Shown: positions 1-35,126 of the stretch, one piece after another
How positions within the stretch are numbered: position 1 is the stretch's first letter
How the letters are laid out: each line of letters begins with the position of its first letter
Assembly: GCA_950097015.1 (NCBI GenBank)
Contig: CATNEN010000008.1
Location: 2,108,001-2,172,000, forward strand
Length of the DNA: 64,000 nt
Origin: Macrostomum hystrix
Lineage: Eukaryota > Animalia > Platyhelminthes
Reading direction: 5' to 3'
The notes under the pieces: generated by a model
What the model was told of the DNA's origin: nothing
The model's database searches: none
What the model saw: only the letters and a program-made list of their open reading frames with translations
Translations under genes and position numbers: made by a program

Positions 1-292
1 TTACTTTTCGACTTAAGCTCGCAAGCCGCTGCACAGTATGGCCGAACTTAATATATGATGCCGCAGCGAGCATTGTGCGCGCACTAAACTAAAGTACTTT
101 TTCGGATGTTTCCGTTCGTTCCACCGCCCAACCCCCACCCCCAACTGCTGCTGCGATGGACAGAATGATAAGCAAGAAAAGAAAATGAAGTCTTTCATTT
201 GTGTGCGCTTGTGGATGTGCACCACATGGCTGTGCCATTGTGAGGTGCTCGTTAAACATTGTAATGAGCATGAGTGAGAGTTATATAGTATA

Positions 293-3200
293 GACGGAGA
301 GATGAGTAGCTATGAGCAGTGAGAGGGAGATGGGATACGGAGAGATGAGTAGCTATGAGCAGTGAGAGGGAGATGGGAGACGGAGAGATGAGTAGCTATG
401 AGCAGTGAGAGGGAGATGGGAGACGGAGAGATGAGTAGCTATGAGTAGTGAGAGGGAGATGGGATACGGAGAGATGAGTAGCTATGAGCAGTGAGAGGGA
501 GATGGGATACGGAGAGATGAGTAGCTATGAGCAGTGAGAGGGAGATGAGAGACGGAGAGATGAGTAGCTATGAGCAGTGAGAGGGAGATGGGAGACGGAG
601 AGATGAGTAGCTATGAGCAGTGAGAGGGAGATGGGATACGGAGAGATGAGTAGCTATGAGCAGTGAGAGGGAGATGGGAGACGGAGAGATGAGTAGCTAT
701 GAGCAGTGAGAGGGAGATGGGATACGGAGAGATGAGTAGCTATGAGCAGTGAGAGGGAGATGGGAGACGGAGAGATGAGTAGCTATGAGCAGTGAGAGGG
801 AGATGAGAGGCGGAGAGATGAGTAGCTATGAGCAGTGAGAGGGAGATGAGACGCGGAGAGATGAGTAGCTATGAGCAGTGAGAGGGAGATGGGATACGGA
901 GAGATGAGTAGCTATGAGCAGTGAGAGGGAGATGGGAGACGGAGAGATGAGTAGCTATGAACAGTGAGAGGGAGATGAGAGGCGGAGAGATGAGTAGCTA
1001 TGAGCAGTGAGAGGGAGATGAGACGCGGAGAGATGAGTAGCTATGAGCAGTGAGAGGGAGATGGGATACGGAGAGATGAGTAGCTATGAGCAGTGAGAGG
1101 GAGATGGGATACGGAGAGATGAGTAGCTATGAGCAGTGAGAGGGAGATGGGAGGCGGAGAGATGAGTAGCTATGAGCAGTGAGAGGGAGATGGGAGACGG
1201 AGAGATGAGTAGCTATGAGCAGTGAGAGAGAGATGGGATACGGAGAGATGAGTAGCTATGAACAGTGAGAGGGAGATGAGAGACGGAGAGATGAGTAGCT
1301 ATGAGCAGTGAGAGGGAGATGGGAGACGGAGAGATGAGTAGCTATGAGCAGTGAGAGGGAGATGGGAGACGGAGAGATGAGTAGCTATGAGCAGTGAGAG
1401 GGAGATGGGATACGGAGAGATGAGTAGCTATGAGCAGTGAGAGGGAGATGGGATACGGAGAGATGAGTAGCTATGAGCAGTGAGAGAGAGATGGGAGACG
1501 GAGAGATGAGTAGCTATGAGCAGTGAGAGAGAGATGGGATACGGAGAGATGAGTAGCTATGAACAGTGAGAGGGAGATGAGAGACGGAGAGATGAGTAGC
1601 TATGAGCAGTGAGAGGGAGATGGGAGACGGAGAGATGAGTAGCTATGAGTAGTGAGAGGGAGATGGGAGACGGAGAGATGAGTAGCTATGAGCAGTGAGA
1701 GGGAGATGGGAGACGGAGAGATGAGTAGCTATGAGCAGTGAGAGGGAGATGAGACGCGGAGAGATGAGTAGCTATGAGCAGTGAGAGGGAGATGGGATAC
1801 GGAGAGATGAGTAGCTATGAGCAGTGAGAGGGAGATGGGATACGGAGAGATGAGTAGCTATGAGCAGTGAGAGGGAGATGGGAGACCGAGAGATGAGTAG
1901 CTATGAGCAGTGAGAGGGAGATGGGAGACCGAGAGTTGAGTAGTGAGAGGGAGATGGGATACGGAGAGATGAGTAGCTATGAGCAGTGAGAGAGAGATGG
2001 GAGACGGAGAGATGAGTAGCTATGAGCAGTGAGAGAGAGATGGGATACGGAGAGATGAGTAGCTATGAACAGTGAGAGGGAGATGGGATACGGAGAGATG
2101 AGTAGCTATGAGCAGTGAGAGGGAGATGGGAGACGGAGAGATGAGTAGCTATGAGCAGTGAGAGGGAGATGGGAGACGGAGAGATGAGTAGCTATGAGTA
2201 GTGAGAGGGAGATGGGAGACGGAGAGATGAGTAGCTATGAGCAGTGAGAGGGAGATGGGAGACGGAGAGATGAGTAGCTATGAGCAGTGAGAGGGAGATG
2301 AGACGCGGAGAGATGAGTAGCTATGAGCAGTGAGAGGGAGATGGGATACGGAGAGATGAGTAGCTATGAGCAGTGAGAGGGAGATGGGATACGGAGAGAT
2401 GAGTAGCTATGAGCAGTGAGAGGGAGATGGGATACGGAGAGATGAGTAGCTATGAGCAGTGAGAGGGAGATGGGAGACGGAGAGATGAGTAGCTATGAGC
2501 AGTGAGAGGGAGATGGGAGGCGGAGAGATGAGTAGCTATGAGCAGTGAGAGGGAGATGAGAGGCGGAGAGATGAGTAGCTATGAGCAGTGAGAGGGAGAT
2601 GAGAGACGGAGAGATGAGTAGCTATGAGCAGTGAGAGGGAGATGGGAGACGGAGAGATGAGTAGCTATGAGCAGTGAGAGGGAGATGGGAGACGGAGAGA
2701 TGAGTAGCTATGAGCAGTGAGAGGGAGATGGGAGACGGAGAGATGAGTAGCTATGAGCAGTGAGAGGGAGATGGGAGACGGAGAGATGAGTAGCTATGAG
2801 CAGTGAGAGGGAGATGGGAGGCGGAGAGATGAGTAGCTATGAGCAGTGAGAGAGAGATGGGAGACGGAGAGATGAGTAGCTATGAGCAGTGAGAGGGAGA
2901 TGAGAGACGGAGAGATGAGTAGCTATGAGCAGTGAGAGGGAGATGGGATACGGAGAGATGAGTAGCTATGAGCAGTGAGAGGGAGATGGGATACGGAGAG
3001 ATGAGTAGCTATGAGCAGTGAGAGGGAGATGGGATACGGAGAGATGAGTAGCTATGAGCAGTGAGAGGGAGATGGGAGACGGAGAGATGAGTAGCTATGA
3101 GCAGTGAGAGGGAGATGGGAGGCGGAGAGATGAGTAGCTATGAGCAGTGAGAGGGAGATGAGAGGCGGAGAGATGAGTAGCTATGAGCAGTGAGAGGGAG

Positions 3201-4670
3201 ATGAGAGACGGAGAGATGAGTAGCTATGAGCAGTGAGAGGGAGATGGGAGACGGAGAGATGAGTAGCTATGAGCAGTGAGAGGGAGATGGGAGACGGAGA
3301 GATGAGTAGCTATGAGCAGTGAGAGGGAGATGGGAGACGGAGAGATGAGTAGCTATGAGCAGTGAGAGGGAGATGGGAGACGGAGAGATGAGTAGCTATG
3401 AGCAGTGAGAGGGAGATGGGAGGCGGAGAGATGAGTAGCTATGAGCAGTGAGAGAGAGATGGGAGACGGAGAGATGAGTAGCTATGAGCAGTGAGAGGGA
3501 GATGAGAGACGGAGAGATGAGTAGCTATGAGCAGTGAGAGGGAGATGGGATACGGAGAGATGAGTAGCTATGAGCAGTGAGAGGGAGATGGGATACGGAG
3601 AGATGAGTAGCTATGAGCAGTGAGAGGGAGATGGGATACGGAGAGATGAGTAGCTATGAGCAGTGAGAGGGAGATGAGAGACCGAGAGATGAGTAGCTAT
3701 GAGCAGTGAGAGAGAGATGGGAGACCGAGAGTTGAGTAGTGAGAGGGAGATGGGATACGGAGAGATGAGTAGCTATGAGCAGTGAGAGGGAGATGGGATA
3801 CGGAGAGATGAGTAGCTATGAGCAGTGAGAGGGAGATGGGAGACGGAGAGATGAGTAGCTATGAGCAGTGAGAGAGAGATGGGATACGGAGAGATGAGTA
3901 GCTATGAACAGTGAGAGGGAGATGAGAGACGGAGAGATGAGTAGCTATGAACAGTGAGAGGGAGATGAGAGACGGAGAGATGAGTAGCTATGAGCAGTGA
4001 GAGAGAGATGGGATACGGAGAGATGAGTAGCTATGAGCAGTGAGAGGGAGATGGGAGACGGAGAGATGAGTAGCTATGAGCAGTGAGAGGGAGATGGGAT
4101 ACGGAGAGATGAGTAGCTATGAGCAGTGAGAGGGAGATGGGATACGGAGAGATGAGTAGCTATGAGCAGTGAGAGAGAGATGGGAGACGGAGAGATGAGT
4201 AGCTATGAGCAGTGAGAGAGAGATGGGAGACGGAGAGATGAGTAGCTATGAGCAGTGAGAGAGAGATGGGATACGGAGAGATGAGTAGCTATGAGCAGTG
4301 AGAGAGAGATGGGAGACGGAGAGATGAGTAGCTATGAGCAGTGAGAGAGAGATGGGATACGGAGAGATGAGTAGCTATGAGCAGTGAGAGAGAGATGGGA
4401 GACGGAGAGATGAGTAGCTATGAGCAGTGAGAGAGAGATGGGAGACGGAGAGATGAGTAGCTATGAGCAGTGAGAGAGAGATGGGATACGGAGAGATGAG
4501 TAGCTATGAGCAGTGAGAGAGAGATGGGAGACGGAGAGATGAGTAGCTATGAGCAGTGAGAGAGAGATGGGAGACGGAGAGATGAGTAGCTATGAGCAGT
4601 GAGAGAGAGATGGGATACGGAGAGATGAGTAGCTATGAGCAGTGAGAGAGAGATGGGAGACGGAGAGATG
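293..4670. repeat. 43-bp minisatellite array, about 100 copies
   Basis: Unit GATGAGTAGCTATGAGCAGTGAGAGGGAGATGGGAGACGGAGA recurs at 301, 344, 387 and onward, with variants confined to a few positions. Confidence 0.98.
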
Positions 4671-5145
4671 TGCAGCTATTAGTTCCTGCGAACCAAGTAA
4701 CAAATGATATAATCGAGTTTATAGAAGCAGGCCTTAAGCTTCGCTCTCTGTTGGTATTTTTCCCCGTGGCTTGTTCGACTTATTAGGTTGCAGCTCTCTG
4801 AGCTGGTTATCTTGCACTGTACTCACGCCATACCATCGTCATAATAAGAAAAAAATTGACCACGTAGGAACGCTTAAGTTTGAGCAGTACAAATAAGCAC
4901 CACGGAAATGTTTACAGACAGACATTTTTTCATGTTTCTGCATCACATGCAACGACAATGTTATACCCAAACATGTAATGTTCGTGTAGACAGGAATTTT
5001 ATTGCATGGCTTAACTGCTACTAAATGTGTTCTGGAGTATTTGAGGACCACAAAATCTAAAGGGGTCCTATTTTGACTGAACAAATGGACAGTTTAACAA
5101 GTCTGTTTTTCGGTCCTGTGTTACATGAGCCGAGCTGAGGAATAA

Positions 5146-6100
5146 CAACAACAACAACAAAGAACTGCTCCCGCCAGCCACGCAGTGGCCAGAGAGGGGG
5201 AGAGCAGTCAGAGAGCGCGTTTCTGGGCCAACGATCTCAAAAAGTCACCCGCTAGCTTGGTCCGGGGCGCCAGCATCACTCAGAAGCCGTTCAGGAAATC
5301 TCGCCGTTCGCCCTTGGCCTCGCCTGCGCGGTCCCTGCAGCTTGAGCAGCAGCACGTCGTGTAGTGGCTCAGGGCAGCGGGCCTCCGACCGGATGACGTG
5401 GCCAGCCAGTCGAAGTCGCCGCCCGCGCAGCAGGTCAGAAGGCCGCGTCAGGCGCGCCCTAGCGTAGAGCGCGGCAGTGGTCTCACTGCCTGGGCCGCTG
5501 CGCACCCCGAACGCCGCACGCAGCATGACCGCATGCGCAGCGTCCAGCTGCCTCTCCAAAGCGTCCGTCAGGGTCCAGGTCTCGGCGTTATACAGCAAGA
5601 CAGTCTCAACGACTGCCTGAAACAGCTGAGCCTTGAGCCCGTCGTCCAGGGCCTCAGATTGGAGTATGGGGCGCACTGAGCGGAGCGCGGCCCAGGCCAG
5701 TCCTCGTCGCCTCACCAGGTCGTCGGCAACGTCTGGCACGAGGCCGCCCGAGGTACAAGAACTGCTGGCAGCGGGTAAGCCTGATTGCTTCTCCAGCAGC
5801 GTCTCGATAGTTGATAGGAACTGGTCCAGCACGGGCTGTAACCGAGCTAGCAGCAACAGCTTTGCGGCGCAGGACATGAGCGAAATCCCCCTGTGCTCCT
5901 CCTTCCGTGTCGTGCCTGGCTTCTTCGGAATCGCAACGATGTGCGCGGTTGTCCACTCACGCGGGGCGCGGCACCTCCAGAGAGCACGCCGTTCATCACG
6001 CGGGCCACCTCAGTGGCGACCCTCGTGACTCGCAGTGCCTCCATAGGTACCTCGTCTGGTCCAGGGGCGCGGCCTCCCGGCGCCCGTCGAGCAAACTGCT
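5146..6100 (-). mobile_element. 5'-truncated, internally deleted, frameshifted non-LTR retrotransposon (RTE/RTEX-like reverse transcriptase remnant)
   Basis: Minus-strand frames give RT N-terminal motifs (APGPDEVPMEAL; W.TAHIVAIPKKP...HRGISLMSCAAKL...ARLQPVLD), then FLYLG and the RTE-type C-terminus (VETVLLYNAETWTLT...RRLRLAGHVIR). A (TTG)n tail reads as CAACAACAA on + at 5146-5160. TGAGGAATAA occurs at both 5136-5145 and 6167-6176 (probable 10-bp TSD). Clade assignment is from motif recognition only. Confidence 0.88.
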
Positions 6101-6130
6101 CGGGCAGTTTGCTCATGTGACAGCTTGAGT

Positions 6131-6164
6131 GCCGTAAAGACGGTCTCTTACTGCGAAGACTCAA
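6131..6164 (+). other. Fragment of the spliced-leader (SL) exon sequence, truncated before its 3'-terminal AUG
   Basis: GCCGTAAAGACGGTCTCTTACTGCGAAGACTCAA matches the first 34 nt of the Macrostomum lignano SL as I recall it (...GACTCAATTTATTGCATG). It is not followed by the SL 3' end or a donor site, so it is not an intact SL RNA gene. Confidence 0.8.
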
Positions 6165-6328
6165 GTTGAGGAATAATAACCTGTTCATTCCTTATCCACA
6201 TTCCTTCTCCACATTAAAGCCTGAGTTTGAATGACAAAACCCGAGATTGAATGGCACAGAGCGATAGTCTATGGACCAAACGGCGCCAACTGGCTGGATT
6301 AATTCTATGGCTGTATGAATGACAAAAA

Positions 6329-6417
6329 CCAAGGACCACTAGAAGAAGACAGGGCCACTAGAGACACACCACTAGAGACAGGGCCATATGCCCTAGTCTT
6401 CTTCTAGTGGTCCTTGG
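6329..6417. repeat. 89-bp inverted-repeat (hairpin/MITE-like) insertion
   Basis: Perfect 22-bp arms at 6329-6350 (CCAAGGACCACTAGAAGAAGAC) and 6396-6417, flanked on both sides by ACAAAA. Confidence 0.75.
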
Positions 6418-8445: not shown

Positions 8446-11400
8446 ATGGAGGAGGAGGAGGCTGCAGCAGATAAGGCAACAGAGGTGGAGGTCGCCACAT
8501 CACTAGGCGGTTTCACCCTGGTGCCGGACAAGACGCGCAAGCTGCGCCGTCTCGGCCCAAGTTCCGGCTCAACCTATCGGCCAGAATGGATGCGTCGGCC
8601 AGTTGCCATTGACAACAGTCTAGACAACAGCGGTTCTTTGCTGCCAGTTGATTCGCTTACCTGTCTGCGTCCGGCGTTGCGCGCCGCTCTCCGGTCAACC
8701 GGTTTCGAGCACCTGTTCCCAGTGCAGGCAACCTCTGTGCCGTTGATGCTGGCGTCGCATCGTTTCAGCTGGTCCCGACCTCGCGACTTCGCCGTCTGCG
8801 CTGCCACTGGAAGCGGCAAAACTTTGGCCTATGTGTTGCCAGCTCTGCACCTGCTATTGTCCTGTCGCACCGTTGCATTGCGATGCATCATTGTACTGCC
8901 CGTTAGAGATCTGGCTATGCAGGTTAGTCAAATGCTTTTTGGACCTTTCTTAAACCACTTCTGCAATTAACTAATCATGAACTATTAAAACACCCTTCTT
9001 ATCTATTTTTCTTCTTCCTTATTTTCTCTGTCAACTCTGATTTATTATCACCCGTCCCAACCTCATCCCCGACCCTTCCTCACTTCCGCTCCCTTCCTCA
9101 CTTCCGCTCCCTTCCTCACTTCCGCTCCCTTCCTCATCTCCGCTCCCTTTTCACTTCCGCTCCCTTCCTCACATCCGCTCCCTTCCTCACTTCCGCTCCC
9201 TTTTCACTTCCGCTCCCTTCCTCACCTCAGCTCCCTTCCTAAACTCCGCTCCCTTCCTAAACTCCGCTCCCTTCCTAAACTCCGCTCCCTTCATCACATC
9301 CACTACCTTCCTCACTTCCGCTCCCTCCCTCATCTCCGCTCCCTCCCTCATCTCCGCTCCCTTCCTCACTTCCGCTCCCTTCCTCATCTCCGCTCCCTTT
9401 TCACTTCCGCTCCCTTCCTCACCTCAGCTCCCTTCCTCACCTCAGCTCCCTTCCTAAACTCCGCTCTCTTCCTAAACTCCGCTCCCTTCCTCACCTCCTC
9501 TCCCTTCCTCACTTCCGCTCCCTTCCTCACTTCCGCTCCCTTTTCACTTCCGCTCCCTTCCTCACCTCAGCTCCCTTCCTAAACTCCGCTCTCTTCCTAA
9601 ACTCCGCTCCCTTCCTCACTTCCGCTCCCTTCCTCACTTCCGCTCCCTTCCTCATCTCCGCTCCCTTCCTCATCTTCGCTCCCTTCCTCATCTCCGCTCC
9701 CTTACTCATCTCTGATCCCTTCCTCACCTCAGCTCCCTTCCTCACCTCCTCTACCTTCCTCATCTCCGCTCCCGTCCAGGTGCACCAGGTGTGCACTCGT
9801 CTTCTCGACGCTCTGCCAGAATTCGAATCCGATAGCAGCGAACAGATCCCAGTGTCGGGAGACCAGGAACAAAACCCGCAAAATGAGAAAATCAGTAGAC
9901 GCCCGCGAAAAATCCGTTGTCAACTGTTGGTTGGCGAGCGCAGCCTAGAGAAGGAGCGAGACCAACTGGTTCGCCGCCTGCCAGACGGTAGCTATCAATC
10001 AGGCGCCGACCTGGTCGTGTGCACTCCGGGCCGACTGGCCGATCATCTGCTTAACTGTCCCGGTCTGAGTCTAGCGAAACTGCGACTGCTCATCATTGAC
10101 GAGGCTGACAGGGTGATGGCCGAACAGAAACAAGACTGGTTCGGCTTGCTTGAGAGGCTGCTGGACAGGTATTTCTGCTTTTTTGTCACCTTATTTCTCC
10201 CATAGCCCGTGTTTCGTACAAAAATGATTTGTAGCTTAGTGGTTAGAGCGTCCAACCCATGAATTGAAGGTAGAGGGTTCGATTCCCGACTCCACTGGAA
10301 CAAGTTGTGTCATTCAGCAAGACACTTATATCCGCATTATTTCAGTTCATCCAATTGTTAAATGGGTTCCAGCATTAGCTGGGGTAATTGACGGTAGGTG
10401 TGGCGTCCCACCAATCCATGGACTGAACAGCCGTACGCAGCCTTCAGATGCGCCGCGCAATAGCTGCGTGCTGTCGGCTGCACATCTGGCCCGATTGGGG
10501 CAGGTGTAATCAATTATTACATTCTTACTATTTCTCACATAACCTGTGTTTCTCCCTATTTCTCCCATAACCTGTGTTTCTCCCTATTTATCCCATAACC
10601 TTTGCTTCTCCCTATTTCTCTCATAGCCTTTGTTTCTTCCTTTTTCTTCCCTAGCCTGTGTTTCTCCCTATTTCTCCCATAACCTTTGCTTCTCCCTATT
10701 TCTCCCATAGCCGGTGCTTCTCCCTATTTACCTAAATACCAGATTTTCTCCCCAATAAATTGGAGAATTCTCCCCTCTCTTCTGAATCACTAAATATGCT
10801 CTACTGATTAGCAAGTGATCAGTATCAGTTTTCCCCATCCATTCCGTTCCCTCCCGCAGGCCCAACCCCCATCCCAGCATCTATTCTTGGCTGCACACTG
10901 AGCCGCCGCATCTGCAAAAACTGTTGCTAAGCGCCACCCTGACGCACAATCCGGAACTTTTGCAACGCTTCCGGCTGCACAATCCGCTACTATTGACTGT
11001 CAGCGCCGAGTCAGACAAAGAGCTGGAAGTGTCCGCCGCGCCCGGCCACCTTCGCGAATACTTTGTCCAGTTGAAACCGTCTCAGAAGCCGCTATTCATT
11101 ATCCACCTCGTGCTAGGCTTGGGCCGCAGTCGGGTGCTGTGCTTCACTAATTCTAGGGAGTCCGCGCATCGACTGGCGGCTCTGGTGCGACATTTTGGAG
11201 ATCCCAGAGTCACCTGCGAGGCTGTGTCGGCTAGGCTGCCAGTGAGTGCTCGGCTTTTTAGAATACTTAATTTGTTGGTGACTATTTTCTGGTAAACAGC
11301 GGGAGTAACTATGACTTCATTTGTGTAGATAGTGCCTCGTCATCTTATTAGTAATGTAAACTAGTGTGCATGTTTTTTACGGATAGGTCGGAAGTTCGAA

Positions 11401-34311: not shown

Positions 34312-34621
34312 ATAATAATAATAATAATAATAATTGATTACACCTGCCCCAATCGGGCCAGATGAGCAGCCGACAGCACAGCCGCAGCTATTGCGCGGTG
34401 CATCTGAAGGCTGCGTACGGCTGTTCAGTCCATGGACTGGGGGGACGCCACACCCACCTTCAATTATCCCAGCTGATGCTGGTACCCATTTAACAGCTGG
34501 GTGAACTGAAGCAATGCATAGTTAAGTGTCTTGCTAAAGGACACAAATTGTTTCAGTGGAGTCGGGAATCGAACCCCCGACCTTCAAGTTGTGTTTCCGA
34601 CGCCCTAACCACTAGGGCTAC
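34312..34621 (-). mobile_element. Full-length tRNA-derived CORE-like SINE (copy 2) with an (ATT)n tail
   Basis: Minus strand: GTAGCCCTAGTGGTTAGGGCG (A box), GGTTCGATTCCC (B box), TGTGTCCTTTAGCAAGACACTTAAC...CTTCAGTTCACCCAGCTGTTAAATGGGTACC (CORE-like), then a unique 3' part. The tail reads as (AAT)n on + at 34312-34334. Confidence 0.88.
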
Positions 34622-35126
34622 AACCTCTTAAATTAATTGATGATATTGCTAATTTATACAATTTTGAATCAATATGGATTCGCTAAAGAGGTTAATACTG
34701 AGCAATGTTACTTGTCCTTGTCACCAGGGTTTTCGACGAGAATCGCTGAACATCTCAACAATGCTGTCGCTGACTCGGATGGCTTTGAAATATCGGTGGA
34801 CTTCCACGAAAAATCGGTCATTCGGTTGTGCGGCTATCGTGAAGTAGGCAGTGGGTATTTGAAATATCCCCGTGGTTTTTCTACTGTAAATTATTGTTCA
34901 TTCTTCAGCGAACCCAATTGGATTTCACAGTAATTAATTGCCTCTCAAAGGTACCATAACCAAATACGTCACGCGTAAAATTACTTAAATCGTACTCTTA
35001 CATCATTTACGAAAATAAGTTTTCTACATTGCTACTAATAGTACAGACTATACACTATGCCTAAGTGTAATACTATCCTAATTCAATTGCACCATAGGCG
35101 ACCGCTATTGGTTTTCAACTTCTATT

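Follow-up and report, generated by a model that had tools for sequence, protein, structure and literature searches.

An inverted spliced-leader fragment at the 5′ junction of a LINE insertion in the flatworm Macrostomum hystrix, probably acquired by twin priming on a second RNA

Introduction

The 5′ inversions of L1, a long interspersed nuclear element (LINE), were reportedly traced to twin priming by Ostertag and Kazazian in 2001. Chimeras of L1 with U6 small nuclear RNA (snRNA) arise by template switching, in which the first-strand cDNA jumps and full-length sense U6 is added. LINEs that insert specifically into spliced-leader (SL) RNA genes are known as SLACS, CZAR and CRE in trypanosomatids and as NeSL-1 in C. 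elegans, and the recycled cDNAs of dinoflagellates carry relics of the SL. In primates, L1 chimeras contain antisense 5S rRNA (nt 1–45), tRNA (nt 1–37) or U5 snRNA, with nt 1 at the junction and a target-site duplication (TSD) around the whole, and they are attributed to twin priming (bioRxiv 10.1101/2025.02.02.635956). Here we describe an insertion in the flatworm Macrostomum hystrix in which a 5′-truncated LINE is joined to the first 34 nt of the worm's own SL in antisense orientation. It lies in a stretch of 64,000 nt from GenBank assembly GCA_950097015.1 (contig CATNEN010000008.1, positions 2,108,001 to 2,172,000 of the forward strand), referred to as the window, whose numbering is used below wherever no contig is named. 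A sequence-only reading of this window, made by a model without database searches, had already pointed to the SL and to twin priming. In our literature search no paper brought twin priming and the spliced leader together; the genome paper on Symsagittifera mentions both the SL and long terminal repeat (LTR) elements and does not connect them.

Results

The captured piece, GCCGTAAAGACGGTCTCTTACTGCGAAGACTCAA on the + strand at 6131–6164, is identical to nt 1–34 of the 45-nt SL exon in the SL RNA genes of the same genome (34/34), which agrees with the sequence-only reading that the SL is present from its first base. The leader had been ascribed to Macrostomum lignano, which does not hold: the source is its congener M. 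hystrix, and the SL is highly conserved within the genus Macrostomum (Wiberg et al. 2023, the M. hystrix assembly). M. lignano has an SL RNA gene of 109 bp, and its SL was published as a 35-mer, which corresponds to nt 11–45 of the 45-nt M. hystrix exon and shares nt 11–34 with the window piece. When the window was shuffled 100 times, a 24-nt core of the 34-mer never matched by chance. A search of the M. hystrix assembly for the 34-mer, with up to 2 mismatches allowed, returned 71 matches, 23 of them exact, and 19 of the matches are copies of the SL RNA gene in tandem arrays with a period of ~11.6 kb (C15:9741–33064, C17:2776–120859 and C42:14545–62142). The C17 array switches strand between 68409 and 80461. 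In the SL RNA genes the 34-mer continues as ...TTTATTGCATG, then GTAAGACACCG..., and the exon end is adjoined by the donor GTAAG. The 109-nt SL RNA unit, which agrees with the 109-bp gene of M. lignano, is predicted to form three hairpins (z = −4.0), the second and third of them separated by UAUAUUUUUAG, and in this fold the apical loop of stem-loop 1 is the AU-rich segment nt 30–38.

Ten RNA-derived contigs (run X4) carry the end of a SMART template-switch oligo (...AGAGTACGGG) directly 5′ of the base at 6131, and the same G is the start of a full-length SL-headed LINE copy (L026) and of many dispersed SL copies. This supports G6131 as nt 1 of the SL, with a precision of about 1 nt as the oligo also ends in G. 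The captured pieces in turn provide independent support for an SL of 45 nt that begins 10 nt before the published 35-mer does. We rejected the possibility that the window piece is itself an SL RNA gene or pseudogene: it ends at nt 34, where it passes into the TSD, and has no nt 35–45, donor GTAAG, intron or Sm site.

On the + strand the junction consists of the LINE end, TCGG, an inverted LINE arm, ATGTGA, a 10-mer, SL nt 1–34 and the TSD, in this order (Table 1). The (TTG)5 tail of the LINE adjoins one TSD copy and SL nt 34 adjoins the right one, with SL nt 1 facing the LINE, so the antisense, inward-pointing arrangement inside a TSD that had been proposed for this locus is confirmed. The first arm of the 11-bp hairpin is the last 11 nt of LINE homology and the second is its inverted copy; the loop TCGG (6100–6103) is not LINE sequence, and family copies have other bases there. 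Hairpins of at least 11 bp were absent from 5,000 shuffles (0/5000), and the region folded as DNA gives z = −4.2. The second arm is a snap-back of the end of the first-strand cDNA. If the target base is put back to its original state, the 10-mer is a perfect inverted copy of 6159–6168; the original target GCTG is known from the empty sites and the left TSD copy. The 10-mer is a snap-back copy of the junction between primer and SL. Both fillers had been called snap-back in the sequence-only reading, which gave the 11-bp hairpin exactly and a CTTGAGT/ACTCAAG pair (6124–6130, 6159–6165) that is now seen to be the inner part of the longer 10-nt inverted copy. Because the 10-mer spans both target and SL, a strand consisting of target ...CAGC followed by antisense SL existed and was copied before the final joining. 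This is evidence from the sequence itself that the 3′ end released by the second nick was lengthened on the SL, from nt 34 to nt 1, as twin priming proposes.

Both LINE and SL are enclosed by TSD copies that match at 11/12 positions, with a perfect 10-bp core; the 10-bp duplication reported earlier (TGAGGAATAA) is therefore real and extends to 12 bp. The deviating T at 6166 in the right copy is a later change or a mis-repair. Nine paralogous copies of the host repeat were read (L122–L130), and in all of them the left flank runs straight into the right flank with no LINE and no SL. Their uninterrupted site reads ...gagccgaGCTGAGGAATAAtaacctg... / ...gagccgaGCTGAGGAATAAtaacctgttcattcc..., L122 deviating at one base, and the empty site that had been predicted from the window (...GCTGAGGAATAATAACCTG...) occurs verbatim in paralogous repeat copies. 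Since the empty sites have no SL, the SL came with the insertion and is cargo, not flank. A contig joining 5132 to 6167 (X6, record 25) was considered as an empty allele and rejected, as it derives from paralogous repeat copies. The host repeat (5091–5145 plus 6165–6330, and copies such as L122–L130) is short and multicopy, with adjacent inverted matches at other loci, suggesting a foldback element or one resembling a miniature inverted-repeat transposable element (MITE). Just upstream of the insertion lies a 4.4-kb minisatellite (290–4670) with a 43-bp unit (GAGATGAGTAGCTATGAGCAGTGAGAGGGAGATGGGAKACGGA-like).

The same arrangement recurs at short interspersed nuclear elements (SINEs). The census was based on SL copies with up to 2 mismatches in nt 1–22, a pattern with 108 genomic matches, many of them inside repeats; it covers the matches listed, all but 8 of the total, and for 82 SL-like copies lying beyond the arrays the flanking sequence was read. 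Among the matches listed, twelve copies are head-to-head with a tRNA-derived SINE (L024, L028, L029, L068, L077, L079, L082, L085, L089, L095, L107 and L120): between SL nt 1 and the antisense 5′ end of the SINE lies a locus-specific filler of 0–35 nt. The SL is truncated at an apparent nt 33–44, or at nt 33–41 if the diverged L079 is set aside. Most of these cases involve a ~310-nt tRNA-like element with an (ATT)n tail; L079, L089 and L095 have diverged or different SINE elements, and at L077 the SINE itself is 5′-truncated. Ordinary copies of the (ATT)n-tailed element also occur in the window, at 34316–34630 and 10229–10519.

Clear TSDs enclose the SL in 8 of the 12 SINE cases (Table 2), and their 5′ copy abuts or runs into the SL. 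Six of these eight TSDs overlap the SL by 2–8 nt of SL-matching microhomology; at L029, the target's own CG in place of SL bases marks the primer. In all nine mapped events (the window and these eight) the first SL-derived base is at nt 30–37, within the predicted apical loop of stem-loop 1. Templated filler is seen here as well, with CTCTCG pairing with CGAGAG at L028 and an inverse copy of SL GGTCTCT at L024. A genome-wide search with exact patterns found 4 head-to-head SL/SINE arrangements and 0 in which a sense SL precedes the SINE head, and reversed-pattern controls gave 0; by our own arithmetic (~1,700 SINE heads, ~85 dispersed SL copies, 220 Mb) adjacency by chance would account for ~0.01–0.04 events. 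A single SINE master copy carrying the SL was rejected, given that fillers, SL end points and TSDs vary between loci. Counting the window insertion, the genome has at least nine well-supported events, and the SINE cases that lack a clear TSD would bring the number to thirteen at most. Five of the SINE-linked pieces (L024, L028, L068, L085 and L089) begin ACCGTAAAG, with A for G at SL nt 1, and all SL RNA genes seen have G; the A may have been added without a template, or in connection with the cap, where the template ends.

The LINE in the window is 98–99% identical to other copies over 5146–5815 and 95% identical over 5816–6099, and the insertion is young. All 12 other family copies checked end in ...GGCGGGAGCAGTTCTT, followed by (TTG)n-type tails and unrelated flanks. 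Compared with L034, the window copy lacks 589 bp at 5815/5816 and with them most of the reverse transcriptase (RT) domain. The breakpoints of this internal deletion show no microhomology, and it may reflect a jump of the RT on its template or a subsequent loss. The open reading frame (ORF) of the family matches RVT_1 in L034 (E = 1.5e-29), and a Pfam search of the window LINE's own ORFs gave no match. The remnant that had been described as RT thus belongs to a family that has one, with little of it left here. Among the traits of RTE-like, APE-type non-LTR elements, the RT domain and the short-repeat 3′ tail are thus seen in the family; an APE endonuclease domain was seen in the related element L026 and not in the window family sequences examined. 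The 5′ junctions of 13 other 5′-truncated copies of the window family are ordinary and have no SL. A site-specific retrotransposon targeting the SL was also rejected, given the empty sites without SL, the twelve family copies in unrelated flanks and the 13 truncated copies without SL.

Further SL copies in the genome are of other kinds. At L026 (G000:C7:9274929–9274962, minus strand) a sense 45-nt SL stands 74 nt ahead of an ORF that encodes an APE domain, and this shows that some LINE RNAs are trans-spliced and retrotransposed with the leader attached. L081 has a PHD-like ORF1. Same-strand SL pairs lie 3.6–8.4 kb apart in conserved contexts: L025/L002 (C7:8556394, 8561382), L072/L073 (C7:5516363, 5519979), L113/L114 (C8:3485160, 3492320) and L115/L116 (C39:15248142, 15256514). 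In some of these paired-SL families the repeat ends ~40–45 nt after the SL and is followed by TGGCGCCCGAAC, which resembles a primer-binding site (PBS), and at least three LTR-retrotransposon families appear to carry the SL at the start of R. Around L109 (C24:4546060 region), degenerate repeats like the 5′ part of the SL (gccgtaaaga...) lie downstream of a truncated SL-like copy and may be a small SL-derived tandem array. The truncated SL copies L078, L094 and L109 fall outside the census classes, and a Pfam search of ten ORF pieces near SL copies in unique contexts (L074, L076, L081, L094, L102 and L112) was uninformative on retroelement content. For annotators, SL k-mers in Macrostomum arise by at least four routes, namely SL RNA genes, LTR R regions, sense heads of LINEs and inverted pieces at SINE or LINE 5′ junctions.

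Table 1 Features of the LINE insertion and its flanks (window positions)
Feature	Position	Strand	Basis or detail
Left flank, multicopy host repeat, ending in left TSD copy	5091–5145		32 other genomic matches
Left TSD copy GCTGAGGAATAA (core TGAGGAATAA at 5136–5145)	5134–5145		same as uninterrupted site in L123–L130
LINE, 5′-truncated	5146–6099	−	homology to family copies, ending exactly at 6099
LINE 3′ tail (TTG)5, (CAA)5 on + strand	5146–5160	−	12/12 other copies checked end likewise
Perfect 11-bp hairpin	6089–6114		arms GAGCAAACTGC (6089–6099) and GCAGTTTGCTC (6104–6114), loop TCGG
ATGTGA, six bases where cDNA ends joined	6115–6120		source searched in LINE copy and SL RNA gene
CAGCTTGAGT	6121–6130		exact reverse complement of SL nt 29–34 (ACTCAA) plus original target GCTG
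SL nt 1–34	6131–6164	+ (sense on +, antisense to LINE)	34/34 against SL RNA genes on C15, C17 and C42
Right TSD copy GTTGAGGAATAA (core TGAGGAATAA at 6167–6176)	6165–6176		T at 6166, target has C
Right flank, same host repeat continued	6165–6327		dozens of matches, 87–96% identity, query positions 3–163

Table 2 SINE-linked SL pieces with clear TSDs
Locus	TSD	Shared with antisense SL
L024	GTCTTTCAATAAAT	8 nt
L028	CTATAAA	5 nt
L029	CAATCGA	none; target's CG replaces SL bases; SL-derived part nt 1–34, as in the window
L068	TTTGACTGG	none clear (terminal mismatch)
L077	TTAGT[A/G]AAAAT	3 nt
L082	TAAAGC[T/A]GAA	2 nt
L085	GTTTTAAT	3 nt
L120	AGGTAAC[A/G]ATT	3 nt

Discussion

With this junction anatomy, the empty sites, the templated fillers and the recurrence at SINEs with microhomology in hand, we read the window insertion as probably the product of heterologous twin priming during target-primed reverse transcription. 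The endonuclease of the LINE would have nicked one strand of GCTGAGGAATAA inside the host repeat, and first-strand cDNA would have started from the nicked 3′ end, with the (UUG)n tail of the LINE RNA as its template, and stopped ~950 nt in, at 6099. A second nick 12 bp away would have freed the 3′ end of the other strand (...TTATTCCTCAGC-3′ on the window minus strand), which, not priming on the first cDNA, would have served the RT as a primer on a separate RNA carrying the SL, copied from nt 34 as far as the capped nt 1. Both nascent 3′ ends may then have snapped back, over 11 nt of LINE and over 10 nt across the target/SL junction, before being joined across six bases that the reading does not explain. 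We infer both this order of events and the identity of the SL-bearing RNA; that an end-joining polymerase did the joining is a guess. Twin priming as the geometry of the locus had been part of the sequence-only reading, and the inverse copy of the target/SL junction and the 12 SINE insertions with a head-to-head SL now speak for it.

As for the template, in most of the SINE cases the SINE is complete or nearly so at its native 5′ end, which meets SL nt 1 head-to-head, and a separate SL-bearing RNA is therefore needed for the SINE cases. For the window LINE it is the favoured reading. All captured pieces, with the exception of the old and diverged L079, end inside the SL exon, and this, together with the nine start points in the predicted loop, favours free SL RNA over SL-bearing mRNAs as the probable template, with nt 30–38 forming the predicted apical loop of stem-loop 1. 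It is possible, if doubtful, that intact SL RNA or the SL small nuclear ribonucleoprotein (snRNP) is a preferred and perhaps recruited bridging template for the second-strand priming of LINEs and SINEs, its exposed AU-rich apical loop (nt 30–38) serving as a landing pad for an AT-rich target end. If true, trans-splicing components would be found at integration sites, and retrotransposition would steadily seed antisense SL pieces in the genome.

Several points weigh against heterologous twin priming at the window. The six bases ATGTGA (6115–6120) have no source in the LINE copy or the SL RNA gene. No clear pairing is seen between the primer end ...CAGC and SL nt 35–38, so that this locus lacks convincing primer microhomology and priming there would have been essentially unpaired. 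No contig in four sequencing runs (Logan contigs) bridges 6099–6167, and the junction is that of the assembly alone. Twin priming by the RT of this LINE family is itself read from the DNA. Finally, L026 is a 5′-complete, single-ORF LINE that starts exactly with the sense 45-nt SL, and this brings in twin priming in cis: the LINE RNA would itself have been SL-trans-spliced, the second primer would have landed on its own 5′ SL and the several kb between would have been lost. L026 encodes an Exo_endo_phos domain (E = 3.8e-11) and has 44% amino-acid identity to the N-terminus of the window family ORF; L081, L074 and L112 also resemble the 5′ ends of SL-headed LINEs, and no template is nearer to hand than the RNA of the integration complex itself. 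We nevertheless consider priming in cis unlikely, given that the SINE cases cannot be cis, that the two parts kept in classical twin priming usually lie next to each other on one RNA whereas kilobases would be skipped here, and that among the matches listed none to the SL is on C32 near the longer family copy. Hence, of the two templates that had been offered earlier, an SL-trans-spliced LINE transcript or a separate SL RNA or SL-bearing mRNA, the separate RNA is needed in the SINE cases, and for the window LINE it is L026 that keeps its own transcript under consideration.

Capture at the DNA level seems to us improbable. Here a ready-made SL cDNA, either stray or the strong-stop DNA of an SL-bearing LTR element, would have been put into the break by end joining. 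Several LTR families do carry the SL ~40–45 nt before the end of the LTR, followed by the PBS-like TGGCGCCCGAAC, and minus-strand strong-stop DNA made from them would have the complement of SL nt 1 as its last base; fillers of the snap-back kind may also be likened to the templated insertions of end-joining polymerases. However, a strong-stop fragment should run past nt 45 into U5, which no piece does, and the window piece is canonical (34/34) whereas most LTR copies are mutated. The microhomology between TSD and SL and the narrow range of start points (nt 30–37) fit priming on RNA. An SL already present at the target, as a relic, through an SL-targeting insertion or as part of an unrelated repeat, is largely refuted, as is chance or an assembly artefact, and we regard this whole group as very improbable. 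SL-like copies are common in the genome (71 matches to the 34-mer, 108 to the 22-mer), many of them within repeats, but the intact site has no SL in 9/9 host-repeat copies read, the SL sits between the two TSD copies, and the flanks match none of the SL-bearing repeat families. The 34/34 match is too long for chance and, although no read contig spans the junction, an assembly error would not yield a TSD together with templated fillers. First-strand template switching of the U6/L1 type was rejected, as the SL is antisense to the LINE and there are 0 sense SL–SINE arrangements genome-wide.

If heterologous twin priming is correct, the locus is a natural record of what happens to the second DNA end during the integration of non-L1 LINEs and SINEs in a flatworm, with a copy of the primer/template junction of a kind that is rarely preserved. 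Compared with the LINEs that insert into SL RNA genes, it likewise links non-LTR elements with the SL, but for SLACS, CZAR, CRE and NeSL-1 the SL is the target, whereas in Macrostomum it is cargo and the empty site has none. The SL relics of dinoflagellates and the 5′ SL copies of M. hystrix LTR elements and LINEs resemble the window piece in being DNA from a reverse-transcribed SL-bearing RNA; such relics are in sense orientation at the 5′ end of the retro-copied RNA, whereas the window piece is inverted and would stem from a second priming reaction. In the U6/L1 chimeras, too, one TSD holds a truncated LINE whose 5′ end carries a copy of an abundant small RNA of the nucleus, but U6 is in sense orientation and the SL is antisense.

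With classical L1 twin priming the events share two priming reactions from both ends of a staggered break and an inverted 5′ segment within one TSD. There both segments are near-contiguous and come from one L1 RNA; in Macrostomum the inverted segment would come from another RNA, or from the far 5′ end of the same RNA, and since it is SL and not LINE sequence the two segments are not adjacent parts of the LINE. Closest are the chimeras of small RNAs with L1 in primates, which are alike in the antisense geometry and in the one TSD around the composite. They differ in that the partner here is the SL, which mammals do not have, that the host is a flatworm and that the LINE is a non-L1 element with a (TTG)n tail; moreover, most of the Macrostomum events are on a tRNA-derived SINE and not a LINE, and the junctions carry templated snap-back fillers. 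The same geometry has thus already been described for 5S rRNA, tRNA and U5 with mammalian L1 and no concept is overturned; the SL is a new partner RNA and would lengthen the list, still short, of small RNAs that twin priming has captured.

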